Source: Macrostomum lignano
Taxonomy: Eukaryota
Length of the DNA: 64,000 bases
Assembly: GCA_002269645.1 (NCBI GenBank)
Contig: NIVC01000843.1
Coordinates: 248,001-312,000, forward strand
Reading direction: 5' to 3'
Shown: positions 4,808 to 61,791 of the stretch, one piece after another
Position numbering within the stretch: position 1 is the stretch's first letter
How the letters are laid out: each line of letters begins with the position of its first letter
Translations under genes and position numbers: made by a program
The notes under the pieces: generated by a model
Database searches by the model: none
The model's input: only the letters and a program-made list of their open reading frames with translations
Told to the model about the DNA's origin: nothing

Positions 4808-5118
4808 TAATAATAATAGACTATACCTGTCCCGATTGGGTCAGATGTTCAACTGACAGCCCAGCCGCAGCTATTGCGGTGCGGTGCATCTGAAGGCTGC
4901 GTACGGCTGTTCAGTCCAAGGACTGGGGGGTCACCACACACACCCTCAATTACCCCAGCTAATGCTGGCACCCATTTTACAGCTGGGTGAACTGAAGCAA
5001 TGCAGAGTTGTAAATGCCTTGCTCAAGAACACAATTTTTTTCTAGTGCATGGGATCGGGAATCAAACCCCTGACCTTCAAGTCGTAAGTCCGACGCTCTA
5101 ACCATTAGGCTATAGACT
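4808..5118 (-). mobile_element. tRNA-derived CORE-like SINE, near full length
   Basis: The minus strand begins with A-box-like tagcctaatggttagagc and B-box-like ggtttgattccc, followed by the CORE-like body and an AT-rich tail. Confidence 0.8.
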
Positions 5119-6255: not shown

Positions 6256-9200
6256 TTAGCCATTCTCAGCATCTATCAGAGGCCCATCAGATACAATCTC
6301 AATGTAATCGGTGCAGTCGCTGACAGGTCGCGTGCTCGCGCCCGACGTCTCTTGTAGAATATCAGCGTTGAATTTGCCATTAGCTTTAGGTACCAGGGCT
6401 GTATATATGCATTCAGTTTCGTTCTGAAGTGAAGAAAATACGCGTAAAAATCTGTGACCAGAAGCTGCCTCACGTGCAGTGAGTTAAGGTAGCTACGTGT
6501 TCTGCTGGTAATCACATACCCCGTACGCAGAGTTCAGTCGACTGTTGGAAGCCTGATCGAAACTCTCTGTAGATCGCGGAGGCTCTCGTGGTAGTGCTTC
6601 ATCAGCTTGATCTTGGGCTACAGCTGGCTTTGTTTCAACTTCCTGAGACTTTTGCGGTTGCACCTGAACTGCCGGCTTCTAAAGTTTATAAAATAATTTA
6701 AAACTTCTGTGTAAATTTCAGTACAAGATCGTTATAAGAAATTCATTGGAATTCACCTTTCTCATCTGGTAGATGATCGCTAGAGCAAGAATGCCCACCG
6801 CAACCACTGTCGATACGGTTAAGACGAATGCCAACCATAAGGGTTCTTTCTGCTGTTTCGAGCCAACCGACTTCGTCTCTGAATATTTTACAGTGTTCAG
6901 TGTGGCTAAAAATCTCAACTAAAAATCCTAAATAAGTATAAAAATACGAGTAATACTCTAGTCTATCCTTATTTTACCCAGATAGTTTTCCACTGACGTT
7001 AGATACTGTACTACACGTAGTCCCTGCTAAACGTGTCAACGATTTTTACATTACATTACATTACAGTATAATATTTCTCCAATGCGTATTTTAAGTCCGT
7101 CATGACTTGTGAGACGTAAAGGACTTGCGTACCACATCTAGATATTGAAAGAATTTCGGTGATGGTCGAATGCCAGGGCACTCCTGACTGAACAGCCGTG
7201 CAATTTATAGTTAAATTCGACAAGCCGATGGCTGTACAACAGTCATAGCAGGTCCAACTGGATTTTTTCACTGAACCGTTGTCAAAAGAGTTGTTCAATT
7301 CCTCGGCTGTGACAGCAACAGTGGCGTTAATTTCACTTGAAAAATTGCCATTCACAGAGCAGCTGTGATTCGCTACTGGCTCTGACTCGGATGACTTGAA
7401 CTCGAAAGTCAGCAGTTGGCTGGAAGAGTTGGTGTCGCAGTTGCTGGACTTGACTATCCCGATTGTAAGGTCCATCGGAGGATCTGAAATACGGTAGAGT
7501 CTTTTAATTATAAGAAGTCATAGTTTACCAAGAATATTAAGAGGGGCTAAAATAGTGATGCAACTAGTAAATGAATGATATAAAAGAAATCTTTAAAAAG
7601 TGGCTGCTCCGAGCTTGATGTAGTTAGCATACTGGAAGTTACGCAAATGTATTAGTTAAAATTAGAATTTCATGTTTATTTAGTACGTCTCAGATAATGC
7701 TCACTTCTTAAATTTGTTTCATACATTAAACATATAAACAGTCTTGAGCCTAATCCCTTTTAAGTGCATCAACTCACACAGCACGCGAAGATACTTAGAG
7801 CTCAACACGACACCACCTGCTCTGCAGGTGTAGTTTCCCGCATCTGATGGTTGCACATGCGAAATCTCATAAGCCTGGCTTCCGTTTGCAAGAGTTCGAT
7901 TCTCGTCGTCGCGAGTCAGAGTGATCAGTGAGGTATTTATTGAGCAGTTTGATAGGCAGCTCACTGTCACACTTGAGTTCTGTTTCACTTGTCCAATTGA
8001 AGATCCGTTCAATGTTTGAAAATCAGCTGGAGAGATCAGATATGATTAGCGGTACATTGGATGGGAACTATCTTAAGATTTTAATTTTATATAGCGACTC
8101 ACTTTGAACGCCATGGAGACCGATCCACATATCGACAAAGTTCATGCACTGCCTTTGTGGCACAGTTTCATTGGCGACATATTTTCGAAGTAGTATTATC
8201 CGAACCTAATAAATAATAATAAGTAATTAATTTAATATTTACACCCACCCCATTTGGGCCAGATGTGCAACCGACAGCTCAGCCGCAGCTATTTGCGCGG
8301 TGCATCTGAAGGCTGCGTACGGCTGTTCAGTCCAAGGACTGGGAAGTCGCTCACACAACCTCAATTACCCCAGCTAATGCTGGCACCCACTTTACAGCTG
8401 AAGCAATGCAGAGTTAAGGGTCTTGCTCAAGGACACAAATAGTTTCAGTGCGATCGGGAATCGAACCCCCAACCTTCCAGTCGAGAGTCTGATGCAAACC
8501 ACCAGGCTACCACCCCCTGTACCAAACTGAGAACTTAATAAATTCTAAAATATTCTATATTTTGCCTATAATTTGGTGGATAAAGTTGGATCATTTCTAC
8601 TCTATTTAAACTTCACGCAAAAAATCGTTACCTGATCCCTGATACAAGGAACTGTCAGTGTTTCTCCATGAGAAACATTTGTTGGCGTTTTGCCGCAAAA
8701 CTCCCATGTCCCGCTCTCTGCATTATCATACACAGAGCTGATGCTCTTTGAGTTGCAGTTCTCCGACCCGAAATCCAGGTCCGCCTGAGACGTCCAGATC
8801 TCAATGTCTGCGGCTCGAGCGTTTAAATCGTCTCCAAAATTCGTAAGTTCTGTCTCGCTTAAGCCTGTTAAAATTTATAAATTGATAAAATAAAAACGTT
8901 AAAAAGCCTGATTTGAAAGTTTATTCACAAATTTTGCAATTAGACTCACTTCTGACTTTGACATTCACAGAGCTGATCAGTTCAGGCTTCTTTAGCTTTA
9001 TCACAAACCAGTGAAATCCTGCATCGGCTCCCGCATCATTTCCGTTTTTGCCCTCCTCTGTGTGCAAATATAGGTAGCTGCCGACTTGGTCACCACCAAC
9101 GGGCCGCTTGTAAAAGCAATATGCCTGCCTATTATTATTCAAAATCGACGACTGCCAGGAGCTTTCAATGGAGCCTTTCCGAACTTCCATTTGGCCTGAA

Positions 9201-9690
9201 ATGTTGCAAATGTCACTTTAGACACGGCAAAACACGCATAGTATAGTAAGAGCCGCTCAGTGGTAAACTCGTCTGACTCTGTCGCCACATTCACATTCAT
9301 TTGGGGCTTGCTGACGAAGATTCAGACCCACAAGGGCCAACCCCCAAGGCACAGAGAGTGTACATGTCTGACGATTAGAAAGTCAGAGGACCGCTGTACA
9401 CCCTGTGGCAGCGTGTATGAGTGCTGTGTCTGCGTACAGAGTATTGGGGCACTTGTATGTGCTTAGGAGTCAGCATAATGTGCAAAATTGTCCTTGTGGG
9501 ACGATGTCACCGAAGGCGCTGCGACAGGGTTCCTACTGTCCTTGTTAATCGTATTATTGAAACAGTTTTAGACACCAAAACCACTGCAGCTTGTACACAT
9601 GTACTTACATCTTTGACAACTCACTGATCCAAGAAATGTTATGACCAATGCAGTCACCCAGATCCATGAGAACGATATAAGTCGATTCAT
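6256..9690 (-). CDS. Receptor gene B, apparently intact: SP - F-type-lectin-like - Ig1 - Ig2 - TM - ITSM tail
   Basis: Exons 9690-9609 (MNRLISFSWIWVTALVITFLGSVSCQR), 9195-8950, 8864-8632, 8205-8103, 8026-7778 (DAGNYTC), 7483-~7133, ~6905-6757 (TM LWLAFVLTVSTVVAVGILALAIIY), 6678-6520, 6423-6256 (CIYTAL...TDYIEI). Phases are consistent and no stops were seen. The exon 6 donor and exon 7 acceptor are less certain. Confidence 0.85.
8207..8516 (-). mobile_element. tRNA-derived SINE in intron 3 of gene B
   Basis: Head ggtggtagcctggtgg...ggttcgattccc; body matches the other copies. Confidence 0.8.
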
Positions 9691-10177
9691 ATTTAAATTC
9701 AACCCTAGCTGACAATGTTTTTCGAGTGATGCAGTTCCGAGAACTGAGTGAGAGAATATTAAATTGTTGTTATTTTCGTTCGGCAGCGCTTTTCTAGAAA
9801 TATTCGAAACCGTTTGAAACTGGTGCAACGTGTTCATTGATGAAATCAGTAAATTTAGTTGCCAATGCTTGCACAGATAGTAACTTTATTTATATATAAG
9901 TAGATTATAATTTATTAATTCCGGTCAAAAGCTAAAAATGACACTAAGAAGTATTGTGAAGGGCTGCAGACGGTAACTGTTAAAGATAACTTCAACTGCT
10001 ATTTAAAGTAAGCCTTACTAATTCTAGAAACCGCAAGCTTGCCATACTCGGCCGATTGGAAATAGCTTTATAGTTGTGCTTATTTGATTTCGTGTGATTT
10101 TACAGTTCTCAGAAAACTTGCCAAGCATTTTTAGAATTTTGCATTTAGTGAATTTTGCATTTAGTGCATTTTGCATT

Positions 10178-10358
10178 GGTGCTGGCGCCCCTTGGTGCTG
10201 GCGCCCCTTGGTGCTAAAGCCCCTTGGTGCTAAAGCCCCTTGGTGCTAAAGCCCCTTGGTGCTAAAGCCCCTTGGTGCTAAAGCCCCTTGGTGCTAAAGC
10301 CCCTTGGTGCTAAAGCCCCTTGGTGCTAAAGCCCCTTGGTGCTAAAGCCCCTTGGTGC
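10178..10358. repeat. 16-bp tandem repeat (GCTAAAGCCCCTTGGT), about 11 copies
   Basis: Read directly; the first units are gctggcgccccttggt variants. Confidence 0.95.
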
Positions 10359-10799
10359 TGCAACTACTATCTATGAGAGAACACGTTAAGTAAATTCACA
10401 CGCCAAAATTGCTTTGCTAAAACTTCCATCCAATCCTTCACAGACACAGATAACCAGAATAAACTTACTAAATCAAACAAATTATACTATTAATACCATT
10501 TTATAAAGTGAATCTTTAGTTATCAATAACATAAACCGACGGGCATCAAGTGACATTATTAAACAATCACAGATTTATCTTGATTTGGATTTTCAGCATC
10601 AATAAAAATCGTTTGAACACTGTAATTAGCTTGTAAACAAATTAGCTAAAATAAGAACTAGCAGAGATTTATTTGAAATAGCGTAATGAGATCAAGCAGT
10701 TTCTGTGGTGCAAAGCCGATGGAAATTTGCACTTGCTTATACGACCCATTTGACTTCTGCGGGAAAAGCAGTAAAATATTCTGCGGGAAAAGCGGAAAA

Positions 10800-11905
10800 A
10801 CACTTCGATGCCAGACACTTCAGTAACAGACACTTCAGTAACAGACACTTCAGTAGCAGACACATCAGTAGCAGACACTTCAGTAACAGACACTTCAGTA
10901 GCAGACACATCAGTAGCAGACACTTCAGTAACAGACACTTCAGTAACAGACACTTCAGTAGCAGACACTTAGGTGCCAGACATTTTGGTGACAGACATTT
11001 TGGTGACAGACATTTCAGTAACAGACACTTTAGTAACAAACACTTCAGTAACAGACACTTCAGTAACAGACACTTCAGTAACAGACACTTTGGTGCCAGA
11101 GACTTCGGTGCCAGACATTTCGATGCCAGACACTTCGGTGCCAGACATTTTGGTGACAGACACTTCAGTAACAGACACTTCAGTAACAGACACTTCAGTA
11201 ACAGACACTTCAGTAACAGACACTTCGGTGCCAGAGACTTCGGTGCCAGACACTTTAGTAACAGACACTTCGGTGCCAGAAATTTTGGTGACAGACACTT
11301 CAGTAACAGACATTTTGGTGACGGACACTTCAGTAACAGACACTTCGGTACCAGACACTTCAGTAACAGACACTTCAGTAAGCAGACACTTCAGTAACAG
11401 ACACTTCAGTAACAGACACTTCAGTAGCAGACACTTAGGTGCCAGACACTTCGGTGCCAGACATTTTGGTGACAGACACTTCAGTAACAGACATTTCGGT
11501 GCCAGACACTACGATGCCAGACACTTCAGTGCCAGATGCTTCGATGCCAGACACTTCGGTGCCAGAAATTTTGGTGACAGACACTTCAGTAACAGACATT
11601 TTGGTGACGGACACTTCAGTAACAGACACTTCGGTACCAGACACTTCAGTAACAGACACTTCAGTAACAGACACTTCAGTAGCAGACACTTCAGTAGCAG
11701 ACACTTCAGTAACAGACACTTCAGTAGCAGACACTTAGGTGCCAGACACTTCGGTGCCAGAAATTTTGGTGACAGACACTTCAGTAACAGACACTTCAGT
11801 AACAGACATTTCGGTGCCAGACACTTCGATGCCAGACACTTTGGTGCCAGACACTTCAGTAACAGACATTTCGGTGCCAGACACTTCGATGCCAGACACT
11901 TCGAT
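10800..11905. repeat. 15-bp minisatellite (CAGACACTTC + AGTAA/GGTGC/GATGC variants)
   Basis: Read directly; ends in gtcgagtcactttagaacc, as does the copy at 24.3 kb. Confidence 0.95.
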
Positions 11906-12133
11906 GTCGAGTCACTTTAGAACCTGCTGGTTGTAACTGGATACTACTCGTAAAAGGTGTTAGCCACTGCAGCTTAATTTACTTTGATACTTCTTGTTTT
12001 ATTGTAGAAATGGTATTGATGTGGATTAGCAATTATGAAATACGAGAAATTGCGTGATACACATGTACATTGAATGGTATACAATGTTTTGTTATACTGC
12101 TTTTCAAAGCTTAAGCAATGGTTCTATGAATAC

Positions 12134-12404
12134 TCAGTAAATAAGAGAAATCGCCCACACTTTAATTTGAAAAGTGTTCTTTCGGAGAATAAAAATGCAA
12201 CAAAAATTATTCGCCAATATTAATATCAGTATAACGCCAAATATTCTATAATTATTTAACATTAAAAGGAGACCATCATGGACGTGTCTGGCTTCATAAG
12301 CAGAAGTCCTGTTCAGCCTACTAGCTAATGGGTGTAATCCATCGAATTCATATAAGATCCAGACATTATCGACCGGGTTTGATTCCATCTTGCTGTAAAA
12401 TGCC
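12134..12404 (-). other. Possible orphan exon ending in a hydrophobic segment (also in duplicate ~24530-24815)
   Basis: An AG acceptor is followed by an open frame ending IFGVILILILANNFCCIFILRK; no partner exons were found. Confidence 0.25.
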
Positions 12405-14273
12405 CCTGAATTTTTTATCTTAATCAGCTTCAATTCCTAAATTTATATCCTAATAATCTATTGTTTTCGTATTCCCATGTAGCTTCCATGCAGAGTATCC
12501 GCAACAATATTTTTCAGTAGAAAGTCATTCTTCAACGTAGATATGAACCACCGGAAAGGCAGAAACGATTCGAATAAATAATATCAACTGAACCTATTTT
12601 TTCTTAATTATGCTACAAAGTAAAAAACCGAATCGTCATACTGAATTTTTTTACTAAATTTCCTTATTTCAACGATTTTTTATCTAGAATAAAACTGACT
12701 ATTCCAACGAAGAGATTTATTTTAGCACTTTAAGCGCTTGAGTCAATCGACAACAGATATAGGTTAGCAATCCATTGCCTTCATTTCTGCAGCTGCCTCT
12801 TCTGCTTCTGATGCCCTAATTTTTGATGACTTCGAGAATAAAGAGTGCTCGGCCTGGGGTCTGGAGATCAATAGAGGCATCAAGGGTTGTCAATGCAAAT
12901 CCGTTTACGTGAGGGCGCATCGAAGAGCAAGATTGCGGTGGCGCTGTGGATGGGCCGGCTGCGCCCTCATTCGGACCCAGTCTGACAAGCTTGGCAAGTT
13001 GTACTACCCGACGGGATCTGTTCAAGAGATCAATGGCCGTAGATGCAGATGTTTGAAGTCCCTGCTGATAAAATTACCTAGGGGTTACTATGCGTACACG
13101 TGGCACTGCTATAGTAATACTAGAGTAACATGAGTAACAGCTAGAGCTAGCTGACAGTGGATGTCAAATTGAAAGCGCGGCTTGTAGGCGAGCGCTGCTT
13201 TTAGTCAGATGACACAATTACACTGGCAAAGAGAGTAGAATCATCAAAAAATTACCTAGCTTAAGTCGATCCTCAGACGCAGTAAAATAATTTTAATTAA
13301 AATTGAGTCATTGCTTGTAAATCTAGTGTGCCCATCACCCCAATTTTGCCCCCCTGCGCCCCGCAACTGCTTTAATATTTATATTGTGCATCGTTTATTG
13401 TTAGCATCGTTAATGATTCATATATCGAAACTGAGACATCGTTAATTATAAAAAATCATCGGTCACTCAGTTTGGCCTCTCAAAGGACGTGACGGTTCTG
13501 TCGCTGTAAAATATCCCCTGAATTTGGGGGCATCTCTGTCAGCTTCAATACCCAATGTAGTTACGAAAATTATTTTAATATATAGTTAAATTTATGGGTA
13601 TTTTAATAGCTCTTATTTCATTGTCTCTGCAACAATATTTTTCAGCCGCAAGTAACTCCTGATCAGTGCAGTTCTGAGCACACTGGAAAGAAAAAAATGT
13701 GGCCCAAATCACAGCGTCAACTAGCTTTCCGAGCCAGTCCTAAGAGTATCAGGAAAAACGATCAAGAAAGAATATTAATTAATACAACGCAGTCCAATTC
13801 TGCTCCTGTCTGGATTTAATAGAAATATTTTTTTAAATAATTTTGCTGAAAAATTAACAAAAAACTCATGCTGAGAAATTATTTACTGAAATTGTTTTTT
13901 TCATTTAATTTCAGCATACACGCTCGTGAATAAGAAAGGCAAAAGATTGTAAGAAAGATATTTGTAATAGCTAAATATCCTCAAAGGCAGAGATGAAATT
14001 GAAATAATAAGACACAGGCAATATTGGAGAGGCCACGGGGAAGGCATTACAGCGAAAACAAGGCTTCGGTATGAAACAGCAAAAGTGTTTTAAATATTAA
14101 AATATTGTGAATAAAAATCATCTCCATGACAAAAAAACCCTCGAAATAAAACGTTCTGCCTCTTGTGTTGCACTACATATATTGCTACTGCAGTAGAATT
14201 TAACAGTAGCATATGCAGCAATTTTATTTACAGGTGCCACTTACTTAAAGGAAGGGGTGCCGATATTTGCTAG

Positions 14274-15135
14274 CTTGGTGGGTGCCGCTGTCTCTTGGTG
14301 GGCGCCCCTGTCTCTTGGTGGGCGCCCCGGTCTCTTGGTGGGCGCCATTGTCTCTTGGTGGGCGCCATTGTCTCTTGGTGGGCGCCCCTGTCTCTTGGTG
14401 GGCGCCATTGTCTCTTGGTGGGCGCCCCTGTCTCTTGGTGGGCGCCCCTGTCTCTTGGTGGGCGCCCCTGTCTCTTGGTGGGCGCCATTGTCTCTTGGTG
14501 GGCGCCATTGTCTCTTGGTGGGCGCCCCTGTCTCTTGGTAGGCGCCATTGTCTCTTGGTGAGCGCCCCTGTCTCTTGGTGGGCGCCATTGTCTCTTGGTG
14601 AGCGCTATTGTCTCTTGGTGGGCGCCCCTGTCTCTTGGTGGGTGCCCCTGTTTCTTGGTGGGCGCCATTGTCTCTTGGTGGGCGCCATTGTCTCTTGGTA
14701 GGCGCCCCTGTCTCTTGGTGGGTGCCCCTGTCTCTTGGTGGGTGCCCCTGTCCTATGGTGGGCGCCCCTGTCTTATGGTGGGCGCCCCTGTCTTTTAGAG
14801 GCGCCCTTGTCTTGTGGGGGCGCCCCTGTCTTATGGTGAGCGCCCCTGTCTCTTGGTGGGCGCCATTGTCTCTTGGTGAGCGCTATTGTCTCTTGGTGGG
14901 CGCCCCTGTCTCTTGGTGGGTGCCCCTGTTTCTTGGTGGGCGCCATTGTCTCTTGGTGGGCGCCATTGTCTCTTGGTAGGCGCCCCTGTCTCTTGGTGGG
15001 TGCCCCTGTCTCTTGGTGGGTGCCCCTGTCCTATGGTGGGCGCCCCTGTCTTATGGTGGGCGCCCCTGTCTTTTAGAGGCGCACTTGTCTTGTGGGGGCG
15101 CCCCTGTCTTATGGTGGGTGCCCCTGTCTCTTGAT
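14274..15135. repeat. 20-bp minisatellite (TGTCTCTTGGTGGGCGCCCC/CCAT) with a 278-bp higher-order duplication
   Basis: Read directly; identical ORF-track peptides start at 14595 and 14873, and at 14608 and 14886. Confidence 0.95.
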
Positions 15136-15317
15136 GGGCACCCTACCCTAAAGGTGCTAAGCACTCTGAATAAATTGTGCATGCTTGTTTTCGAAAATAT
15201 TTACAGAAGATACCATGTCTGCCAGTCAATTCATCCAACAACGCAGCTGCAGGGACCGACTCTATTCGATAGTGTAAATTTAGTGCATCGTAAGTCCTAA
15301 AGAAATACACAAAAAAG

Positions 15318-17022
15318 CTATTCATAAACGTAGACACTGCTTCTGTGCTCAGCAGGAGCTTCTACAGGGGCCTTGGCAGCGAGACCCAGTGGAGGCTCAA
15401 GCAGATCAACTCGTCTCTGAAATTCAAAACGTGTACAGAGAACCACTTTGCCAGCACTTTTCTGCAACGAGCATCATTAGAAGCAGTGATACCAAATACT
15501 TCTCTTGAGCAAATCTGCTGTTTCGGTTTTCACATTGTGATGGTCCCATAATCATGCGTCTATCCAGAAAGAAAATCTCACCTGAAGTACTACCTTAATT
15601 CTCAGTAGCGCTGTACATAGTGCAATGAGCGAGACAATAATTATCAAATTGAGTGTCCACTGAATCCAAATCATGAGTTGTTCCTTCTCAACCGAGCCTA
15701 AAGCTGAAATGTAGATTTGTGCTCAAAACTTGAGTTTCTACAGATTTCCGAGCGTAGTTAATTTGGGCTTACGTTTTCTAGGCCGGATTATTTGATAAAC
15801 ACTGGAGGCGAACAGTTCCGATTGTTTAGCTTCATCAAATTGCTTAGCTGAGCAATTCACAGCGAACCAATCCAAGCTGCAGCAGCTCTCGCACACCCAC
15901 TTTGATATCAGCCACTTTGATTGTAACTCCGTGTTACTTTGAAGCCTCTTCAGCATGGGACTCAGTGCATGACATTCGTGCCGAGGTGCTGGCACTGAGA
16001 AAGAGGACCTGAACGAAAGTGCCACATCTTTTCCTTGTTCTTTGATGCAAGCTTCATCTTCGACAGTGATTTCTTGTTCGACTGGGGGATCTGACGGATT
16101 CGTTTGTAGATGAAAAGTAAATTAGCTACAAAATATATTTCAACATATTGAACTTCCACACCAATGGTTAAACCAAATATACTTTCAAAAAGTTGCAATG
16201 CATTCCAAACTGACACCCAAAGTATTTTAAACTCATTTGTTAAGCCTGACTATGTGGTTTAGGACCTGATATTCTCAGAAGACACCACGTAGATTGTATG
16301 ATATTAATCTTAGATGGAGCAACCACAGAACGAGTCATTTATCATCTTCGACATATGTGTATTTCTATCTGTCTGTCATGGATTCATTGATAGAAATTTT
16401 CAAACCCTACTTTATTAAACATCAGTACTACATGTACGTACCTCTCTGCCAAAGCACATTGTACGTTGGATACCTTGACAATATTTTAAGGGATTCTTAA
16501 AATTTGCTGTTCAGAATAGCCCACAACAATTGAATGAAATATTTTTGTCTTTGAGTTGTTATTAAATAAGTCAAATAGGAACATTACACAACTCACACAG
16601 CACACGAAGATACTTGGAGCTCAACACGACACCACCTGCTCTGCAGATGTAGTTTCCCGCATCCGATGGTTGCACATGCGAAATCTCATAAGCCTGGCTT
16701 CCGTTTGCAAGAGTTCGATTCTCGTCGTCGCGAGTCAGAGTGATCAGTGAGGTATTTATTGAGCAGTTTGATTGGCAGCTCACTGTCACACTTGAGTTCT
16801 GTTTCACTTCTCCAATTGAAGCTTCGTTTGAAGTTTGAAAAACAGCTGGAGAGATCAGATACGAATAGCGGTACAATGGATGGGAAATATAACTTAAAAT
16901 TTGAATTTTAGCGACTTACTTTTGACGCCATGGAGGCCAATCCACATATCGACAAAGTTCATGCACTGCCTTTGTGGCACAGTTTCATTAGCGACATATT
17001 TTCGAAGTAGTAATATCCGAAC
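15318..17022 (-). pseudogene. Receptor locus C: 3' half (exon 4, Ig1, Ig2, TM, partial tail) cut off from intact 5' exons
   Basis: Exons 17022-16920 (103 nt), 16845-16597 (Ig1, nearly identical to B), 16090-15773 (YPPVEQ...KWVCESC), 15703-15594 (TM IWIQWTLNLIIIVSLIALCTALL), and 15416 onwards (RRVDLLEPP...SSVY). The terminal exon is unresolved. Confidence 0.75.
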
Positions 17023-17065
17023 CTGATAAATAATAATAAGTAATTAATTAAATATTTACACCTAC

Positions 17066-20000
17066 TGTTGGGGTTGTACTTTGGTTTTTCATGTTGTTTC
17101 ACTGTCTCTCTCTCTCTCTCTCCCTCCCGTGACTGATCATTCTTGCGCGCTATCGTTTTACCCCTACCTGTGTACATTTGTGCTTGCCAGTGTGCATGGT
17201 TTTAACCCCCAGCCAATCGGATGGCGTTTGTCTACTAATGTACGTGGTTTCGTGTTTTGTAGTCAAATAAATCAAAGTAACTTTCGTCACTTCGGTAGAG
17301 ATCTTTCAATGGTATTCTCCTTCGCTTGCAAACATGACTTGACTCAGTTTTTGCCTAGACTAACATTTTGGCGTCGCGAGCAGGATCATGAGCATCAAAT
17401 TGAGAGAGACGCTGCCGTTAAGCAACATAGATGAGCTTCGCGCCTGGGTTGAAGTATTTGACGCCCAGGCCAGATCCAAAGGAGTCGAAGATACCGACGA
17501 GAGACGAGCGCTGACCGACGCTTTCATGGGCTGCCTCGGGGTCGCTGAGCTTATAAAAGTCAAGCAGCTGGTTGTTCCAAAAACCCCGTCTGCGATGAAA
17601 TGGTCTGAAATCAAGCAATGCCTACTGGCGTTTGTGGAGCCCAAGAAGAAACTGCAGATCGCTGAGAGGACAGTCTTCATGTCTATGCGCCAGGCCGAAG
17701 GCGAAACCGTCACCAGCTATGCCGCTCGTCTCAGGGAGCAAGCCGTCGTATGCGAGTTCGAGAGCCTGAAAAAGGAAGGAGCGGACCCCGCCGAAGCGCT
17801 CATCAAGATGCGGCTCATTGCCGGTCTGGCCAACTCGAACATCAGGAACAAGGTGCTCGAACGTGAAGTGACTCAAGAACTGACGGTCGATCAGGTCACA
17901 GAATATGTTCAGCAGCTACTGATGGTCAGCAGCTTCTCAGCTGGGTCCCTGGCTGCTGCTCATTCGACTCTCGTGGATTCGGTGGTGCACCAGGCTAGGT
18001 CGCTGTCGACCGCGGGTCTGACTACGGCTGATGAAGCTCACTGCCATCCGGATAGCTCCGGCTCTGTCAACGTTAATTCGGTTATGAGGCAGAAGCAGAA
18101 CTTCGGACACCAGCGCTGTCAGCGTTGCGGGTTGAGATCGCACCAGAAGCCCGCTGACTGCCGAGCCCTGAGAGCCACCTGCAATCAATGTGGAAAGCCT
18201 GGCCACTTTGCCCGTGTGTGCCGCGGTGCCAGGACCCACTTCGCTGCCCCAGCTGAAGCAGTCGGCACTCAGCTGAGTCCAGAAGACTCCTATCGTGATG
18301 AGCCCGTATTCTACTGTGGAGAAGGAAAGCCTGCCGAGTTCTGCACTGTGAAAATCAATCACAGAGAAGTACTGATGGAGAAGGACATCGGTGCCTCCTG
18401 CTCGTTAATCTCACGAAGGATCTGGAATGAGCTCGGAAGGCCCCCGCTGAAGTCGGCGAAGTCGCGCATGCTGGCGTATGACGGACACGTTATGAGACAG
18501 ATGGGCGTTCTGGAATGCCTGGTGGAGACCACTGGCAACAACGGCCGCTTCAAGGCGGCAGAGCTGCCCGTCATCGACTGCCAACAGGAGTTTGGGCTGC
18601 TCGGCCGGAATCTGCTGGTCCTCGCACCGGTGCACCATGCCAGTTCTGATGAGTCAGCCGCCAGCAACAGGTATGAGAGCTTGTTGGGAATATCTGGTGC
18701 TACGGGAGAAATCCGTCTTTGTGCTGGAGCTAGGTCAATTTTCCAGGCAGCCAGAGAACTGCCCTTAGCGCTGAAGCACTTGGTTAAGAAGGAGCTGGAA
18801 CTGATGGAAAGTGCTGGAATCGTTGAGAAGGTGATGTCGTCGGAATGGGGCAGTCCAATTGTGGTGACGGTGAAGTCAGATCGGGCATCCGTGAGAATTT
18901 GTGGAGATTATTCGGCTGTTAATCGGTTGGTTCAAGACCAGACCTTCCTCACTCCCTCGATTGAGACAGCCTTTTCGAAAATGGCCAACAAGAAGCTGTT
19001 CTGTCGGTTGGACCTATCGGATGCGTACTATCAGGTTCCCCTGGATGAGGAATCGAAGGCGGTGACCACCATAAACACTCCGTTTGGTTGCTACAGGTTT
19101 AACCGGTTGCCGTACGGCATTAAGGTGTCGCCATCTGTTTTTAAACGTGTGATGGAAAAGCTCCTGGGAGACCATCCATGTGTCATAGTATATCAGGACG
19201 ATGTGCTGATCGGTGCTGCAAGCCGGGCAGAGTTGCAGAAAATTAGGGAGCAGGTGCTCAACAAGTTAAAGGCCGCAAATGTCAAGATCAACGAAGCGAA
19301 TTGCGTGATGGAAGCCAACAGCCTGAAGTTTCTTGGTCACATTATTGATGATGAAGGAATAAAACCCGATCCGGGCATGGTGAAACGTGTGATGGATGTC
19401 GAGGTGCCGAAGACCAAGAAAGATTTGGAGAGATTTCTAGGACTGGCTCAATTTTATGGACGGCTGGTTCCAAACTTTTCTGAGAAATGTCGGCCTCTTC
19501 AGGAGCTTCGCCGCGGTGACCGGGTCTTTAAATGGAACGCGGTGGCTGAGGCGGCATTTTCGGAGGTCAAAAGGAGTCTGGCCTCAAACCCGTGCATCAA
19601 GCCGTTTGATGTTTCCGCGCCTGTCTGTCTTCGAGTTGATGCGAGCGAGAAGTCCTTGGGCGCGGTGCTGGTCCAGTCTGGACATCCCGTCATGTTCATG
19701 TCCAGGGCGCTCTCACAGGCAGAAACCAATTACTCAAACATCGAGAGAGAAGCGCTGGCTATTGTTTGGGCGGTTGAACGAGCTCGGAAAATGTTGCTAG
19801 GGAAGAAATTCATTCTGCAGACCGATCACGAGCCTTTGAAGTTTATTCTGAATCCTTGCAAGAATCTTCCAAAGACTGTTTCTGCCAGACTAACCCGGTG
19901 GGCTCTGCGGCTATCGGCTTATGATTACGAGATTGAATATGTGCCGGGAAAGAAGATGCAGGATGCTGACGCTCTATCAAGGCTGAGCTTTGAAAACCTC

Positions 20001-21644
20001 GATCCTGAGACGGAGTCTGTTCACCAGACTGAGTTGATCACTGACGGAGGCTTGGTTACCGTGGAGGAGCTGAGAGAAAGTACTTCCCGGTGTTCACTGC
20101 TTCAAAGACTCCAGCAGAGAATCAGGACAGGCCGGTGGGGTCAGGTCTCTCAGCTGGAGCGGCCGTACAAAGCGTGTCGGGAAGCGTTGTCTGTGGAGAA
20201 CGGGCTGGTCATCCACGGTACCAGGGTGGTGCTTCCGACCATTCTCCGGCGGCGCATTTTGGAGACCGCGCATGATGAGGTGCACCCGAGCGCGGAAAAT
20301 ACGAAGGCCCATGTGTCTAAGGAGTTCTGGTGGCCTGGACTGGATCGCGATGTCCGTCAGTTTGTTGAGCGGTGTCAGCTGTGCGCTGAAAGACGGCCGG
20401 TGGTTCAGCGGAAAATTGACATCTGGCCATCCGAGAGCGAGCCGTGGTCCCGGGTCCACATGGACCACTGTGAGGTGCCAGGAGTGGGCTTGCTGCTTTT
20501 GCTGTCTGATGCATACTCGGGTTGGCCCGAAGCTGTCCAGGTCCCAGACAGGTCTGCGGGCAGTGTGCTGAGAGTGCTGAGAGCGGTGTTCGCCAGAAAT
20601 GAAGTGCCTCGGACGCTAGTGTCGGATAATGCGCCTGAGTTCAGGTCGGAAGGAGTCTCGCAGTGGCTGAACAGTGTCGGGCTGCCAGGAGATGCACACC
20701 CCACCGTACCATCCGGCATCGAACGGGCAGGCTGAGCGGTTGGTGAGGAGTCTCAAAGGCGGGCTGAAGACGTGGACGAAAGTGGTCCCATTTGACCAGT
20801 TCCTGCAGAAATTGCTCCTAACCATTCGCACCAGCAGGCCTAGCGGGAATCGATCCAGCTCGCCGGACATTCTCATGTGGGGACGCCGGCTGCGCCATCC
20901 GCTGACGATGACCGAGCAGGTGGGTGACTCCATCTGGCTGAGGGCTCGGCCTGGCACGGCTCCGGTTCCGGCCAAGTTCATCGTGCAGCACGGCCGGAAC
21001 ACAGCTCTGGTGACCTCAGCTGACCTACCAGACGGTGGACTGCGGATGGCGCACGCAAACCAATGGAGCTGCCGCCCGGAGGCGGAGACCGATCGGCGGC
21101 TGACCGAGGCGGCTGGATCCGAGGATCAGGCTGGGCTATCGATTCAGGGTGCCAAGGCTGGCTCTGACTCGGAGCTGCGTGAACCTGAGGTGACTGACTG
21201 TGACTCCCCGCTGAGTTCTGGAGATGAGACTCTCGAGCCCCACAGCTCGTATGATTTGCGGCCTCGTAAACCTGTTTGTTATAAGGTCTAAGGACAGGTC
21301 TTGCTTTCTTTTGTTTTTTGTTTTTCTGCTTTTGGAGGGAGCAGTGTTGGGGTTGTACTTTGGTTTTTCATGTTGTTTCACTGTCTCTCTCTATCTCTCT
21401 CCCTCCCGTGACTGATCATTCTTGCGCGCTATCGTTTTACCCCTACCTGTGTACATTTGTGCTTGCCAGTGTGCATGGTTTTAACCCCCAGCCAATCGGA
21501 TGGCGTTTGTCTACTAATGTACGTGGTTTCGTGTTATGTAGTCAAATAAATCGAAGTAACTTTCGTCACTTCGGTAGAGATCTTTCAATGGTATTCTCCT
21601 TCGCTTGCAAACATGACTTGACTCAGTTTTTGCCTAGACTAACA
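17066..21644 (+). mobile_element. Full-length Ty3/Gypsy LTR retrotransposon (Mag-like, single ORF)
   Basis: LTRs 17066-17365 and 21345-21644 (300 bp, TG...CA, about 3 differences seen). TSD CCTAC at 17061-17065 and 21645-21649. PBS tggcgtcgcgagcagga (tRNA-Ser-like). PPT ggagggagcag. Confidence 0.97.
17388..21291 (+). CDS. gag-pol: Gag-Pol polyprotein with one frameshift in integrase (~20680)
   Basis: CCHC knuckle CNQCGKPGHFARVC, protease DIGAS, RT YQDD, RNase H DAS/EREALA/TDH, integrase HHCC plus MDH/SDNAPEF. The SNGQAER tail is in the next frame (ORF 20674-21291). Confidence 0.95.
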
Positions 21645-21649
21645 CCTAC

Positions 21650-21919
21650 CCCATTTGGGCCAGATGTGCAACCGACAGCTCAGCCGCAGCTATTTGCGCG
21701 GTGCATCTGAAGGCTGCGTACGGCTGTTCAGTCCAAGGACTGGGGAGTCGCTCACACAACCTCAATTACCCCAGCTAATGCTGGCACCCATTTTACAGCT
21801 GAAGCAATACAGAGTTTGGTGTCTTTTCTCGGGATCACAAATAGTTCCAGTGCGATCGGGAATCGAAACCCGGACCTTCCAGTCGAGAGTCTGACGCAAA
21901 CCACCAGGCTACCACCCCC
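21650..21919 (-). mobile_element. SINE at the position orthologous to gene B intron 3; the Gypsy element is inserted in its tail
   Basis: Same flanks as the 8207-8516 copy (ccctgtaccaaactgagaac); its AT tail lies left of the Gypsy element at ~17030-17060. Confidence 0.8.
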
Positions 21920-21976
21920 TGTACCAAACTGAGAACTTAATAAATTCTAAATTATTCTATATTTTGCCTATAATTT

Positions 21977-23014
21977 GCTAAAGCCCCTTGGTGCTAAAGC
22001 CCCTTGGTGCTAAAGCCCCTTGGTGCTAAAGCCCCTTGGTGCTAAAGCCCCTTGGTGCTAAAGCCCCTTGGTGCTAAAGCCCCTTGGTGCTAAAGCCCCT
22101 TGGTGCTAAAGCCCCTTGGTGCTAAAGCCCCTTGGTGCTAAAGCCCCTTGGTGCTAAAGCCCCTTGGTGCTAAAGCCCCTTGGTGCTAAAGCCCCTTGGT
22201 GCTAAAGCCCCTTGGTGCTAAAGCCCCTTGGTGCTAAAGCCCCTTGGTGCTAAAGCCCCTTGGTGCTAAAGCCCCTTGGTGCTAAAGCCCCTTGGTGCTA
22301 AAGCCCCTTGGTGCTAAAGCCCCTTGGTGCTAAAGCCCCTTGGTGCTAAAGCCCCTTGGTGCTAAAGCCCCTTGGTGCTAAAGCCCCTTGGTGCTAAAGC
22401 CCCTTGGTGCTAAAGCCCCTTGGTGCTAAAGCCCCTTGGTGCTAAAGCCCCTTGGTGCTAAAGCCCCTTGGTGCTAAAGCCCCTTGGTGCTAAAGCCCCT
22501 TGGTGCTAAAGCCCCTTGTTGCTAAAGCCCCTTGGTGCTAAAGCCCCTTGGTGCTAAAGCCCCTTGGTGCTAAAGCCCCTTGGTGCTAAAGCCCCTTGGT
22601 GCTAAAGCCCCTTGGTGCTAAAGCCCCTTGGTGCTAAAGCCCCTTGGTGCTAAAGCCCCTTGGTGCTAAAGCCCCTTGGTGCTAAAGCCCCTTGGTGCTA
22701 AAGCCCCTTGGTGCTAAAGCCCCTTGGTGCTAAAGCCCCTTGGTGCTAAAGCCCCTTGGTGCTAAAGCCCCTTGGTGCTAAAGCCCCTTGGTGCTAAAGC
22801 CCCTTGGTGCTAAAGCCCCTTGGTGCTAAAGCCCCTTGGTGCTAAAGCCCCTTGGTGCTAAAGCCCCTTGGTGCTAAAGCCCCTTGGTGCTAAAGCCCCT
22901 TGGTGCTAAAGCCCCTTGGTGCTAAAGCCCCTTGGTGCTAAAGCCCCTTGGTGCTAAAGCCCCTTGGTGCTAAAGCCCCTTGGTGCTAAAGCCCCTTGGT
23001 GCTAAAGCCCCTTG
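21977..23014. repeat. 16-bp tandem array (GCTAAAGCCCCTTGGT), about 65 copies, nearly homogeneous
   Basis: Read directly; one variant unit near 22518. Confidence 0.97.
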
Positions 23015-23631
23015 CAACTGCTATCTATGAGAGAACACGTTTAGTAAATTAACACACCAAAATTGCTTTGCTAAACTTCCATCCAATCTTACGCAGACAC
23101 AGATAACCAGAATAAACTTACTAAATCAAACAAATTATACTATTAATACCATCTTGTAAAGTTAATCTTTAGTTATAAATAACATAAACCGACGGGCATT
23201 AAGTGACCATTATTAAACAATGAGAGATTTATCTTGATTTGGATTTTCAGCATCAATACAAATACAAAGACTGTACAACATTTGCACTTGGCCATATTTG
23301 ACTTCGTTTTTCTACGTTTTTCTTTCTTTCTTAGAAGGGCTAGCTTAAATAAGCTTCATACAAGCTTCAAGCTGTAATCATTATTGGAGTCCACTTGTTG
23401 CTGGCTATACTTTCACGCACTGTTGTTTCTCCAAGTCCTTGGTAACTCAACCAGCAGTTAGACCTCCTAAGGATTACTGGATTAGTTACCTTTGGTTTTA
23501 AGTAGAGCTGTAAGAACTAATTAGGATAAACGAGGCACAAATAACGGTATTGCTACAACTATAATCCGTTACATGCATAATTTCACACTGATACAATAGA
23601 AACTCGTATAAGTATAGAAGAATACAAGACG

Positions 23632-24312
23632 CTTCGGTGACAGACACTTCGATGCCAGACACTTCGGTGCCAGACACTTCGGTGCCAGACACTTCGATGC
23701 CAGACACTTCGATGCCTGACACTTCGATGCCAGACACTTCGATGCCAGACACTTCGATGCCAGACACTTCGATGCCAGACACTTTGGTGCCAGACACTTC
23801 GATGCCAGACACTTCGATGCCAGACACTTCGATGCCAGACACTTCGATGCCAGACACTTCGATGCCAGACACTTCGATGCCAGACACTTCGGTGCCAGAC
23901 ACTTCGATGCCAGACACTTTAGTCCCAGACACTTCGATGCCAGACACTTCGGTGCCAGACACTTCGGTGCCAGACACTTCGATGCCAGACACTTCGATGC
24001 CTGACACTTCGATGCCAGACACTTCGATGCCAGACACTTCGATGCCAGACACTTCGATGCCAGACACTTTGGTGCCAGACACTTCGATGCCAGACACTTC
24101 GATGCCAGACACTTCGATGCCAGACACTTCGATGCCAGACACTTCGATGCCAGACACTTCGATGCCAGACACTTCGGTGCCAGACACTTCGATGCCAGAC
24201 ACTTTAGTCCCAGACACTTCGATGCCAGACACTTTAGTCCCAGACACTTCGGTGCCAGACACTTCGATGCCAGATACTTCGGTGCCAGACACTTCGGTGC
24301 CAGACACTGCGG
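23632..24312. repeat. 15-bp minisatellite, GATGC-dominated variant
   Basis: Read directly; same right flank as the 10800-11905 array. Confidence 0.95.
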
Positions 24313-25638
24313 TGTCGAGTCACTTTAGAACCTGCTGGTTGTAACTGGATACTACTCGTAAAAGGTGTTAGCCACTGCAGCTTAATTTACTTTGATGCTT
24401 CTTGTTTTATTGTACAAATGGTATTGATGTGGATTAGCAATTATGCAATTCGAGAAATTGCGTGATACACATGTACATTGAATGGTTTTGTTATACTGCT
24501 TTTCAAAGCTTAAGCAATGGTTCTATGAATACTCAGTAAATAAGAGAAATCGCCCACACTTTTAACTTGAAAAGTGTTCTTTCGGAGAATAAAAATGCAA
24601 CAAAAATTATGCGCCAATATTAATATCAGTATAACGCCAAATATTCTATAATTATTTAACATTAAAAGGAGACCATCATGGACGTGTCTGGCTTCATAAG
24701 TAGAAGTCCTGTTCAGCCTACTAGCTAATGGGTGTAATCTATCGAATTCATATAAGATTCAGACATTATCGACCGGGTTTGATTCCATCTTGCTGTAAAA
24801 TGCCCCTGAATTTTTTATCTTAATCAGCTTCAATTCCTAAATTTATATCCTAATAATCTATTGTTTTCGTATTCCCATGTAGCTTCCATGCAGAGTATCC
24901 GCAACAATATTTTTCAGTAGAAAGTTATTCTTCAACGTAGATATGAACCACTGGAAAGGCAGAAACGATTCGAATAAATAATATCAACTGAACCTATTTT
25001 TTCTTAATTATGCTACAAAGTAAAAAACCGAATCGTCATACTGAATTTTTTTACTAAATTTCCTTATTTCAACGATTTTTTACCTAGAATAAAACTGACT
25101 TTTCCAACGAAGAGAAAAGATTTATTTTAGCACTTTAAGCGCTTGAGTCAATCGACAACAGATATAGGTTAGCAATCCATTGCCTTCATTTCTGCAGCTG
25201 CCTCTTCTGCTTCTGAAGCCCTAATTTTTGATGACTTCGAGAATAAAGAGTGCTCGGCCTGGGGTCTGGAGATCAATAGAGGCATCAAGGGTTGTCAATG
25301 CAAATCCGTTTACGTGAGGGCGCATCGAAGAGCAAGATTGCGGTGGCGCTGTGGATGGGCCGGCTGCGCCCTCATTCGGACCCAGTCTGACAAGCTTGGC
25401 AAGTTGTACTACCCGACGGGATCTGTTCAAGAGATCAATGGCCGTAGATGCAGATGTTTGAAGTCCCTGCTGATAAAATTACCTAGGGGTTACTATGCGT
25501 ACACGTGGCACTGCTATGGTAATGCTAGAGTAACATGAGTAACAGCTAGAGCTAGCTGACAGTGGATGTCAAATTGAAAGCGCGGCTTGTAGGCGAGCGC
25601 TGGAAGTATAACTTGAAATTTGAACTTTTGCGACTTAC

Positions 25639-26825
25639 TTTTGACGCCATGGAGGTCAATCCACATGTCGAAAGTTCATGCACTGCTTTCGTGGCACAGT
25701 TTCATTGGCGACATATTTTCGAAGTAGTATTATCCGAACCTGATAAATAATAATAAGTATTTAATTTAATATTTACACCTACCCCATTTGGGCCAGATGT
25801 GCAACCGCAACCTCAACAACCTCAATTACCCCAGCTAATGCTGGCACCCATTTTACAGCTGGGGGAAACTGAAGCAATACAGAGTTTGGTGTCTTTTCTC
25901 GGGATCACAAATACGCTCGTAGTTCCAGTGCGATCGGGAATCGAAACCCGGACCTTCCAGTCGAGAGTCCGACGCAAACCACCAGGCTACCACCCCCTGT
26001 ACCAAACTGAGAACTTAATAAATTCTAAATTATTCTATATTTTGTCTATAATTTGGTGGATAAAATTGAATCATTTCCACTCTATTTAAACTTCACGCAA
26101 AAAATTGTTACCTGATCCCTGATACAAGGAACTGTCAGTGTTTCTCCATGAGAAACATTTGTTGGCGTTTTGCCGCAAAACTCCCATGTCCCGCTCACTG
26201 CATTATCATACACAGAGCTGATGCTCTTTGAGTTGCAGTGCTCCGACCCGAAATCCAGGTCCGCCTGAGACGTCCAGATCTCAATGTCTGCGGCTCGAGC
26301 GTTTAAATCGTCTCCGATTTCCGTAAGTTTTTTTGGGTTAAGTCTGTTGAAATAAAAAAATTTATAAAATGAAGAAAATAGAGAAAAGCACGATCTTGAA
26401 AAGCTATTCCTAAATGTTACAAGCAAGACTGACTTCTGACTTTGACATTCACAGTTCAGGCTTCTTTAGCTTTATCACAAACCAGTGAAATCCTGCATCG
26501 GCTCCCGCATCATTTCCGTTTTTGCTCTCCTCTGTGTGCAAATATTTGTAGCTGCCGACTTGGTCATCACCAACGGGCCGCTCATAAAAGCAATGTGCCG
26601 ACCTATCATTTTCCAAAATCGACGACTGCCAGGAGCGTTCAATGGAGCCTTTCCTGACTTCAATTCGGCCTGAAATGTGGCATGATGCAATCTTACGTAC
26701 AGTCATAAAGCGAAGCAGTGTTATAGTCACCAAAACTTACATTTTTTACAGCTCACTGAGCTGACAAGTGCCATAGGCAATGCAGTCGTCTGGACGGCCC
26801 AGAATATCAGTGAGAATCTACTCAT
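25639..26825 (-). pseudogene. Receptor locus D: 5' half (SP and three lectin-like exons) with frameshifts
   Basis: Exon 1 26825-26741 (MSRFSLIFWAVQTTALPMALVSSVSCKK). Exon 2 26669-26434 has a 10-nt deletion vs B that gives a stop. Exon 3 26343-26112 is 1 nt short in an A-run. Exon 4 25739-25639 has a 2-nt deletion. Confidence 0.8.
25746..25996 (-). mobile_element. SINE with an internal deletion, orthologous intron 3 position in locus D
   Basis: Same flanks as the B and C copies; lacks about 80 bp of the 3' body. Confidence 0.75.
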
Positions 26826-34337: not shown

Positions 34338-34624
34338 GTAGCCATGACAACCAATAGGACTGACAACGTTTCGCCGCCTCGGTCAGTTTACGTTAGCGAT
34401 TGAGGAAGCGCTTGATTCTGTATTCGGCAATAACTATAAGTAACTATATGGAGCGTAACTATTTGGAGCTAACGTCGCCAGAGAATCATCGTGACCATTT
34501 TAAACACGAATATATTCTCGCTCCATCTCAATAACTTGATAACTCGTAAAAACATATCCAGGATTTCGAAATTATAAATTATAGAATGGTCATCAAATAA
34601 AACCAAGAGCTGTGAACTATGGTT

Positions 34625-34815
34625 GATTATAAATTATTATATTTTCATATTAAATTTGGTTCGGGTTTTGGTACTGGGTTCGGATATTGGTACAGGATTT
34701 TGGTTTTGATACTGGATTTGGGTTTTGGAACTGGGTTTGGGTTTAGTACCGGGTTTGGGTTTTGGCCCCGGGTTCGATGTTCGAGGTAGGTGGGATGCTT
34801 GGTTCAGGTTCGGCG
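34625..34815. repeat. Degenerate ~18-bp tandem repeat (GGGTTCGG/GGTTTTGGTAC-rich)
   Basis: Recurrent ggttttggtactgggttc-like units; inverted copy at ~43920-44110. Confidence 0.55.
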
Positions 34816-61672: not shown

Positions 61673-61791
61673 TTAAATCGCGTGTGTAAGCTTATTTTTT
61701 CGGTACCAATATGAAACCTCAGGGCAGTTGGTGTTTGTCTGTCTGTCTGTGTGTCTGTCTGTCTGTGTGTCTGTCTGTCTGTCTGTCTGGC

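Follow-up and report, generated by a model that had tools for sequence, protein, structure and literature searches.

How does a pair of neighbouring receptor genes come to have ectodomains that are nearly identical and signalling halves that can scarcely be aligned? The question is raised by two genes, here called B and C, on the minus strand of a 64,000-nt stretch of the genome of the flatworm Macrostomum lignano (NCBI GenBank assembly GCA_002269645.1, contig NIVC01000843.1, positions 248,001 to 312,000). That whole stretch is the window in what follows, and positions are counted from its first nucleotide. A sequence-only reading of the window had likened B and C to paired receptors such as KIR, LILR and Siglec-5/14, whose ectodomains are homogenised by gene conversion, and had supposed that the same process acts here. 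I propose an answer that keeps the process and drops the pair. Probably the ectodomain of B and C has been overwritten by repeated conversion, old divergence persists elsewhere in the two genes, and C stands as a chimeric pseudogene beside an intact B. The signature of conversion is real; a functional pair in this haplotype is unlikely.

Two genes and the tract they share

The gene models come from splice sites and phases read in the sequence and from comparison of the paralogues within the window (tblastx, tblastn). Gene B (6256..9690, minus) has nine exons, and their joined coding sequence (CDS) of 1740 nucleotides (nt) is an open reading frame (ORF) of 579 amino acids with no internal stop. 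Exon 1 (9690..9609) encodes the leader; exons 2 (9195..8950), 3 (8864..8632) and 4 (8205..8103) a lectin-like N-domain; exon 5 (8026..7778, 249 nt) an immunoglobulin (Ig) domain, Ig1; exon 6 (7483..7133) a Cys-rich domain, the "Ig2" of the sequence-only reading; exon 7 (6905..6757) the transmembrane segment; and exons 8 (6678..6520) and 9 (6423..6256) the tail. The earlier numbering, in which Ig1 is exon 5 and is followed by intron 5, agrees with this model. The C-terminal part of the protein reads ...CIYTAL...TDYIEIVSDG..., with both motifs in exon 9. CIYTAL resembles an immunoreceptor tyrosine-based inhibitory motif (ITIM), with a non-canonical C at position -2, and TDYIEI has the form TxYxxI of an immunoreceptor tyrosine-based switch motif (ITSM). 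These are sequence motifs only; judged by them, B is presumably an intact receptor of the inhibitory type.

Gene C is one old gene, running on the minus strand from 26825 to about 15318, with a composite insert of about 9 kb in intron 4. Its original 5' part (25639..26825, called P1) begins with an intact leader exon, 1'' (26825..26741; MSRFSLIFWAVQTTALPMALVSSVSCKK), that is 37% identical to the leader of B in amino acids and only 61% in nucleotides. With a leader as old as this, C must be an old gene and not a fresh copy of B. The exons that follow are all damaged. Exon 2'' (26669..26434) has a 10-bp deletion that leads to a TGA, exon 3'' (26343..26112) a 1-bp deletion in a run of A, and exon 4'' (25739..25639) a 2-bp deletion, after which there are 37 bp of intron 4 before the junction, at 25602, to a non-coding block called T'. 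Much further downstream lies a second exon 4, 4' (16920..17022), an intact copy with good splice sites and 94% amino-acid identity to exon 4 of B. It is followed by exon 5' (16597..16845, 249 nt), which encodes Ig1, and by a 3' half specific to C (15318..16090). This half is made up of exon 6 (16090..15773), encoding a Cys-rich domain (YPPVEQEIT...), exon 7 (15703..15594) for the transmembrane segment, and exon 8 (15416..15318), which encodes a tail of 32 residues, RRVDLLEPPLGLAAKAPVEAPAEHRSSVYVYE, and then a stop.

The best joined CDS of C (exons 1'', 2'', 3'', 4', 5', 6, 7 and 8) meets its TGA right after the deletion in exon 2'', at about codon 102, and its length is not divisible by three. 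From exon 4' to the stop in exon 8 the frame is open, over 292 amino acids, with canonical splice sites. The transmembrane segment, LMIWIQWTLNLIIIVSLIALCTALL, contains no K, R, D or E at all, and the tail holds no immunoreceptor tyrosine-based activation motif (ITAM), no ITIM and no ITSM. An exon with an ITIM or ITSM was sought between 15318 and 13198 and not found, just as the sequence-only reading had reported of the ITSM. One candidate for an ITIM exon, SVYAEIK at about 13913, was rejected for want of an acceptor in a compatible phase. Also dropped was a model in which C had no leader, exon 2 or exon 3 and carried a duplicated 5.4-kb block of B: the leader at 26825..26741 and exons 2'' to 4'' were found upstream, and the divergence proved to be a mosaic.

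C has the features of an unprocessed (duplicated) pseudogene: its exon-intron structure is kept, its frame has lesions, its exon 4 is doubled and it harbours a retrotransposon with long terminal repeats (LTRs). The UniProt model A0A1I8G312, which is near-identical to the 5' fragment of C and represents a P1-like locus, is read out of frame across the exon 2/3 region, and this fits a decayed locus. The ratio of nonsynonymous to synonymous divergence (dN/dS) between B and C is 1.5 in exons 2 and 3 (16 nonsynonymous to 3 synonymous changes), which fits relaxed constraint. The sequence-only reading had held that its view would fall if C were never transcribed and simply a chimeric dead copy, and with deletions of 10, 1 and 2 bp and an insertion of about 9 kb in intron 4, a chimeric dead copy is largely what C appears to be. 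The notion of a functional pair founders on the stop in exon 2'', on the further frameshifts, on the insert, and on a signalling half with neither a charged residue in its membrane segment nor any of the three motifs in its tail. C is best read, in this sequence, as a chimeric pseudogene and not as an activating partner.

What, then, do the two genes share? Their Ig1 exons had been described as near-identical and of equal length, and so they are: both have 249 nt, they differ at 12 of these (95.2% identity) and in 7 of 82 codons, and both are bordered by AG and GT in phase 1 at each end. Five of the seven amino-acid differences fall within the first 12 residues of the domain, a part modelled with low confidence. 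Another, T66I (B codon 66, at about 7829-7827), lies in the predicted F strand, where the N-glycosylation sequon NYT of B is lost in C, which reads NYI. The earlier claim of a shared Ig1 and exon 4 holds for both, but the tract is larger than was claimed: it takes in intron 4, part of intron 3, and exons 2 and 3 as well (C 26669..25639). In self-alignment, two stretches of C, 16589-17065 and 21642-21977, together run colinear with B 7770-8575. Amino-acid identity between B and C, low in the leader, is 85% in exon 2, 90% in exon 3, 94% in exon 4 and 91% in exon 5; it is 27% in exon 6, 25% in the transmembrane segment and 22% in the tail. The remaining paralogue pairs show 12-56% over all exons.

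The tract has sharp edges. One is 13 bp ahead of exon 2, one at the donor of that exon, one within exon 3, and one 8 bp past exon 5. At the last of these, B and C agree in all of the opening 8 nt of intron 5 (GTGAGTTG; B 7770..7777, C 16589-16596, minus), and past B 7770 and C 16589 the mismatch is 57%, the random level; the breakpoint that the sequence-only reading had expected in intron 5 is located 8 bp into it. Between the downstream halves of B and C no nucleotide similarity was detected by blastn (word size 7) or tblastx. The assertion that these halves cannot be aligned beyond a pattern of Cys is sound so far as nucleotides go, and amino-acid identity is down to 22-27%, but the "Ig2" exons are not unrelated. 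Exon 6 of B and of C have a common framework of six Cys, and each can be aligned to other family members at 28-33%. Against two such members, gene A and a protein of the type of gene D called P0004, exon 6 of C shows 28-40% identity.

A mosaic of divergence

C possesses part of the tract twice, as an outer copy in P1 and as an inner copy next to Ig1. Compared with the outer copy, B mismatches at 7.2% in exon 2, 25.9% in intron 2, 32% in the first 29 nt of exon 3 and 1.0% in the remainder of that exon, 4.5% in intron 3a and 7.9% in exon 4. Compared with the inner copy, it mismatches at 5.4% in intron 3, 5.8% in exon 4, 9.7% in intron 4, and, within exon 5, at 10.5% in the first 76 nt and 2.3% in the last 173 nt (p=0.009). 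The block T' and its counterpart upstream of B, T, differ at 6.0% in their middle part and 1.3% in the distal 1.3 kb. Site counts are small throughout these statistics, and one haplotype was examined. Neighbouring segments differ significantly, with p from 0.03 to 9e-14. Uniform divergence across the exons, which the sequence-only reading had held to be fatal to its own view, is excluded by segments that range from 1% to 32%. A single duplication or crossover does not fit these segments either, because one event predicts one level of divergence.

It might be thought that the exons of B and C are alike because selection has kept them so. Synonymous divergence is 0/45 in exon 3 and 3/45 in exon 2, as against 22/85 in intron 2 (p=4e-5 and 0.009), and from intron 3 to exon 5 the introns differ at 6.1% and the exons at 5.1% (p=0.64). 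Synonymous divergence so far below that of intron 2, together with introns 3 and 4 that are as similar as exons 4 and 5, argues for recent shared ancestry of the tract and not for purifying selection. On this exon-edged mosaic and this low synonymous divergence the supposition of a process like that of paired receptors can stand, as conversion; the working couple of inhibitory and activating receptors that came with it finds no support.

The insert in intron 4 of C consists of T', a 510-bp re-duplication of intron 3 and exon 4, and the retrotransposon. The last is of the Ty3/Gypsy type, 4.58 kb in length (17066..21644, plus), and lies antisense in the intron, 220 bp upstream of Ig1. Its LTRs (17066-17365 and 21345-21644) differ at 3 of 300 positions and have TG..CA ends, there is a 5-bp target-site duplication, CCTAC, and the empty site is present in B and in the third copy. 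Next to it comes the C copy of the 3' part of intron 3 (21645..21975, minus; equivalent to B 8575..8244), which holds a repeat resembling a short interspersed nuclear element (SINE). Upstream of this inner intron 3, instead of exons 3 and 2, C jumps into T' (21976..25602, minus), the second copy of T (10176..13197, minus), which lies upstream of B, between the 3' end of C and the leader of B. T' is non-coding and has two minisatellites, one of 16 bp and one of 15 bp, with a unique stretch between them and 1.3 kb of unique sequence after the second. Its junction with intron 3 shows microhomology between the 16-bp minisatellite and the intron 3 site. Terminal inverted repeats, a target-site duplication, Helitron-like ends and transposon ORFs were looked for in T and none was found, nor is there a third copy in the window. 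The distal 1.3 kb of the block is far less diverged, at 1.3%, than the genic tract.

Minisatellites border the rearrangement junctions and may be recombination-prone sites. The 16-bp unit is repeated 11.5 times upstream of B (10176-10359) and 65 times in C (21976-23014), the 15-bp array lies at 10812-11902 and 23627-24308, and a 20-bp minisatellite of about 44 copies (14274..15143) is found just downstream of the last recognisable exon of C. The SINE-like repeat, about 250-330 bp long and with a tRNA box-B-like sequence (GGTTCGATTCCC), occurs at 483-722, 4808-5112, 8211-8575, 21642-21977 and 25812-26055. It was not recognised by ARAGORN or Rfam, and tRNA and Rfam scans of the window gave no matches. 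The copy in intron 3 of B and C holds a 100-bp patch in which B is unlike both C copies at 16 sites.

I propose that B and C are neighbours in a tandem family, paralogues that parted long ago, and that between them a stretch of DNA reaching from about 13 bp before exon 2 to 8 bp past exon 5 has several times been overwritten. The overwriting would have gone by way of ectopic gene conversion or duplicative transfer, in tracts that stopped where the homology of the old paralogues stopped, at exon edges. It would leave the putative ligand-binding half near-identical, and the leader, exon 6, transmembrane segment and tail would keep their old divergence. The duplication of T and the doubled exon 4 point to at least one duplicative event, for which unequal crossover followed by deletion and a replicative template switch are candidates. 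One of the overwriting events, or a linked replicative rearrangement, would have put a copy of T and the second exon 4 into intron 4 of C. In later steps the LTR retrotransposon would have entered that intron and C would have lost its frame in exon 2. I infer this mechanism and this order of events from the anatomy of the two genes, the mosaic and the lesions.

Several observations weigh against this account. The case for conversion is drawn from one haplotype, and the source assembly is that of a hidden polyploid, hard to assemble (PMC10468722). Where 510 bp are present three times, the inner copy of C shares 26 states with the outer copy as against B, 16 of them in one patch of the SINE-like repeat; outside that patch it is about equidistant (13 versus 15 differences), with 3 private changes. 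With the inner copy equidistant and the informative sites interleaved, it is not possible to say which was donor and which recipient, and a local duplication in C itself could account for some of its similarity to B. Plain segmental duplication belongs to the history as well, as is shown by T blocks that have diverged by 1.3% over 1.3 kb. In exons 4' and 5' dN/dS is 0.29 (9:9, p=0.014 against neutrality), and the 3' half of C may have been under constraint until recently. Lastly, the 1-bp deletion in exon 3'', sitting as it does in an A-run, is possibly a long-read error.

Are there simpler ways to arrive at the same anatomy? One event, whether unequal crossover (within exon 5 or close to it) or partial segmental duplication, might have fused a copy of the 5' part of B to the 3' half of an unrelated paralogue, with decay to follow. 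It would then be no surprise that the colinear B-like stretch in C takes in non-coding DNA and the T block normally found upstream of B, that introns and exons from intron 3 to exon 5 are equally diverged, or that the breakpoint is at the edge of exon 5, where the homology of old paralogues would stop. What makes this unlikely is the single level of divergence that it predicts: adjacent segments differ with high significance, over the whole range from 1% to 32%. C moreover retains its own old leader, an intron 2 that looks old lies between its young exons, and the same boundary anchored at exon 2 recurs in a second gene pair of the window. The locus might, on the other hand, be no history at all but an artefact of assembly, in which haplotypes or homeologues were mis-joined or long reads brought in indel errors, the genome being polyploid and rich in repeats. 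The long-read assembly of M. lignano, a hidden polyploid, is fragmented (PMC10468722), a suspicious inverted repeat of 2991 bp with 100% identity lies elsewhere in the window, and one of the lesions of C is that 1-bp change in an A-run. An artefact is scarcely credible all the same, when B and C differ by 5-6%, above allelic levels, when every junction is unique sequence in a window without Ns, and when the LTR insertion has a clean target-site duplication and matching empty sites. The deletions of 10 and 2 bp are no homopolymer errors, and A0A1I8G312, an independent model, reads its P1-like locus out of frame in the same exon 2/3 region.

It is more tempting to save the pair, and to see in B, with its ITSM, the inhibitory member of a working couple, in C a member with a different signalling half, and in conversion the means by which selection keeps their ectodomains the same. 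The putative ligand-binding exons 2 to 5 are near-identical and the signalling halves differ; C has no ITIM/ITSM exon of the kind found in every other recognisable tail of the window; its frame is open from exon 4' to exon 8, with canonical splice sites and the low dN/dS just given; and B and C are spaced by about 9 kb, like SIGLEC11 and SIGLEC16 (PMC5701461). A working C, however, would have to overcome a frameshift and stop in exon 2 and two more frame-breaking deletions, splice over the 9 kb inserted in intron 4 while skipping a second exon 4, and signal with neither a charged transmembrane residue nor an ITAM. Its exons are conserved no better than its introns. B and C were also both unmatched in word-indexed searches of protein databases, an insensitive method. 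I consider such a couple distinctly improbable, and return to the reading of old paralogues overwritten by repeated conversion, one of which has decayed.

The protein family and its counterparts

The layout of the family is that of a type-I membrane protein, with a signal peptide, a galactose-binding-domain-like N-domain (exons 2-4), an Ig domain (exon 5), a Cys-rich region (exon 6), a transmembrane segment, and a tail with an ITIM-like motif and an ITSM. The N-domain is about 190 amino acids long, and its match to the Pfam family F5_F8_type_C_2 is weak, below threshold. In the AlphaFold2 (AF2) model of P0004, a relative of the D type and not B itself, the N-domain has a predicted local distance difference test score (pLDDT) of 60-90. 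Foldseek matches it to CBM32, F5/8-type-C domains, F-type lectins (1k12, lectinolysin), the galactose oxidase N-domain and SUN domains, with E from 1e-5 to 1e-3 and a template-modelling score normalised to the target (TMt) of up to 0.6. From the model it may be classed, with moderate confidence, as a galactose-binding-domain-like fold, a lectin-type jelly roll.

Exon 5 carries the motif SVTVSC...DAGNYTC. It scores 29.2 bits with Pfam Ig_3, for which the cut-off is 30, and is also just below threshold with Ig_2. Its AF2 model has a pLDDT of 77, and Foldseek gives scores normalised to the query (TMq) of 0.6-0.68 to Ig domains of Fc-gamma receptors, IL-12 p40 D1, LAIR-1 and VEGFR2 D7. By its predicted structure exon 5 is confirmed as an Ig domain, and it is the only one: "Ig2", in exon 6, has no Pfam match and was modelled poorly by AF2, and what is kept across the family is the framework of six Cys. 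The tails of other genes in the window, and those of M. lignano proteins, have in common a tandem of xxYxx[LV] and, about 25 amino acids on, T[DEV]Y[LI]xI[IV]xDG.

How far does this family extend? An exhaustive HMMER profile search with aligned translations of exon 3 among 1.84 billion proteins gave 16 matches at E<=0.001. Twelve of them are from Macrostomum lignano, comprising all the named ones with E<1e-5 plus three more named ones. Of the remaining four, one is an unnamed metagenome protein at 7e-13, matched in nine short stretches and likely repetitive; one, at 4e-5, is a "hypothetical protein" from a metagenome, its N-domain aligning at 28%; and two are weak, with the names subtilisin and bacterial LamG. 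One M. lignano protein, A0A1I8J0M2, is near-identical to the inverted gene at 29530-33828. Word-indexed searches of protein databases with B from Ig1 to tail, the N-domain of B, and C from exon 4 to tail found no match, the method being insensitive here, and a literature search found no paper that describes this lectin-like/Ig/ITSM family. The family appears to be confined to Macrostomum lignano and undescribed.

The closest analogue of B and C is SIGLEC11/SIGLEC16P. In primates the two genes are about 9 kb apart, their conversion tracts are fragmented and repeated, the exons so converted are under relaxed constraint, and one of the partners is often pseudogenised, with a small frameshifting deletion (PMC5701461). 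In B and C too there are genes for receptors of a predicted lectin type about 9 kb apart, with an upstream tract of exons and introns, a few kb long, that has been homogenised, and with signalling halves that differ. The mosaic, the 10-bp deletion in C and the dN/dS of about 1.5 in exons 2-3 are further likenesses. Unlike SIGLEC11 and SIGLEC16, these are genes of a flatworm and not of a vertebrate, they encode an N-terminal domain predicted to be a galactose-binding-domain-like jelly roll and no V-set Ig, and C lacks the charged transmembrane residue for an adaptor of the DAP12 type. Siglecs are recognised by an N-terminal V-set Ig domain that binds sialic acid; the family has no such domain and no sequence similarity to Siglecs.

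In the clusters of Siglec-5/Siglec-14, KIR, LILR and CEACAM, the ectodomain exons of an ITIM/ITSM gene and its neighbour evolve in concert (PMC4042635, PMC2832619). The likeness there is in the tandem cluster and in the tail of B, whose tandem of ITIM-like motif and ITSM is typical of inhibitory members. Those pairs, however, consist of two intact, co-expressed members, one of which signals through an ITAM adaptor, whereas C is disabled and has no activating hallmark. The ectodomain, furthermore, is shared in part only, the membrane-proximal domain not being included. Paired receptors are defined as having both members intact and expressed in overlapping cells (PMC5701461). B and C do have similar putative ligand-binding exons, an ITIM/ITSM tail in one member (B) and a mosaic of the conversion type; they do not have a partner of opposite signalling or two intact ORFs, C having lost its own. 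The locus is no member of any vertebrate paired-receptor family. C can also be set beside the chimeric or unprocessed pseudogenes that arise by unequal crossover, which it resembles in its B-like 5' half joined to another 3' half, its doubled exons, its transposon insertions and its lost frame. Unlike a simple crossover product, with a single level of divergence, it keeps an old leader and intron 2 of its own.

One may go further, and see in the family a convergent invertebrate counterpart of the Siglec-type immunoreceptors, with lectin domain, Ig domain and ITIM/ITSM tail. Tandem conversion would keep its ligand-binding halves concerted or diversified, and broken copies such as C would donate sequence to intact ones like B, in the manner of SIGLEC16P towards SIGLEC11. 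In other haplotypes or lines C could even be an intact partner, tail-less or a decoy. I regard so large a claim as doubtful.

The rest of the cluster

The second pair in the window consists of gene D (55145-53781, minus) and the inverted gene (29366-33828, plus). Their leaders are 33% identical and their exons 2-4 are 92-94% identical. Nucleotide homology begins 7 bp before exon 2 (29523 and 55000) and resumes over exon 6 (33534-33814 and 54061-53781, 91%). Similarity anchored at exon 2 in a second pair suggests that the process is recurrent in the cluster. Genes of the D type have no Ig1 exon; their candidate tail exons differ (about 35%), and both have TEYL.I motifs. The locus of a further relative, P0017 (L001), is a paralogue of the D region at 69-83% and is uninformative for B or C.

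Gene A has an in-frame TAA in exon 6 (1338-1820, minus; ..TSGSLT*QFLFES..) and may be another pseudogene in the cluster; its tail has a canonical ITIM, VTYSVL, and an ITSM, TEYLEI. A fourth member that bears Ig1 is E (48500-49163, minus), with a piece like exon 3 at 49163-49023 and an Ig1 at 48742-48500 that is 37-38% identical to those of B and C. The 2991-bp inverted repeat, identical in its two arms (34188-37178 and 41555-44545), is a palindromic duplication of very recent date or else an artefact of assembly. Each arm carries a tail exon of the family, CTYASL...TEYLMI, and near them 39994-41764 and 44552-46324 form a direct repeat of 1.77 kb at 99.7%. From 56 to 60 kb the window is GC-rich (58-63%), with long CT/TC microsatellites and a weak RVT_1 ORF (57833-59671, plus). 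An ORF of 771 amino acids at 61673-63988 (minus), which runs past the end of the window, has PriCT_2, D5_N and DUF5906 domains and encodes a D5-like primase-helicase. Genes of this kind are typical of integrated elements that resemble large DNA viruses or Polintons.

Concerted ectodomains beside divergent signalling halves are a hallmark of vertebrate immune receptor clusters. The same genomic signature is found here in a flatworm family without sequence relation to the vertebrate paired receptors, and exon-anchored ectopic conversion in tandem clusters may be a general process. The signature by itself is no proof of a functional pair, since one of the partners here is a pseudogene. What the locus does present is an undescribed candidate family of surface receptors, of the inhibitory type, in an animal that is a tractable model of regeneration.

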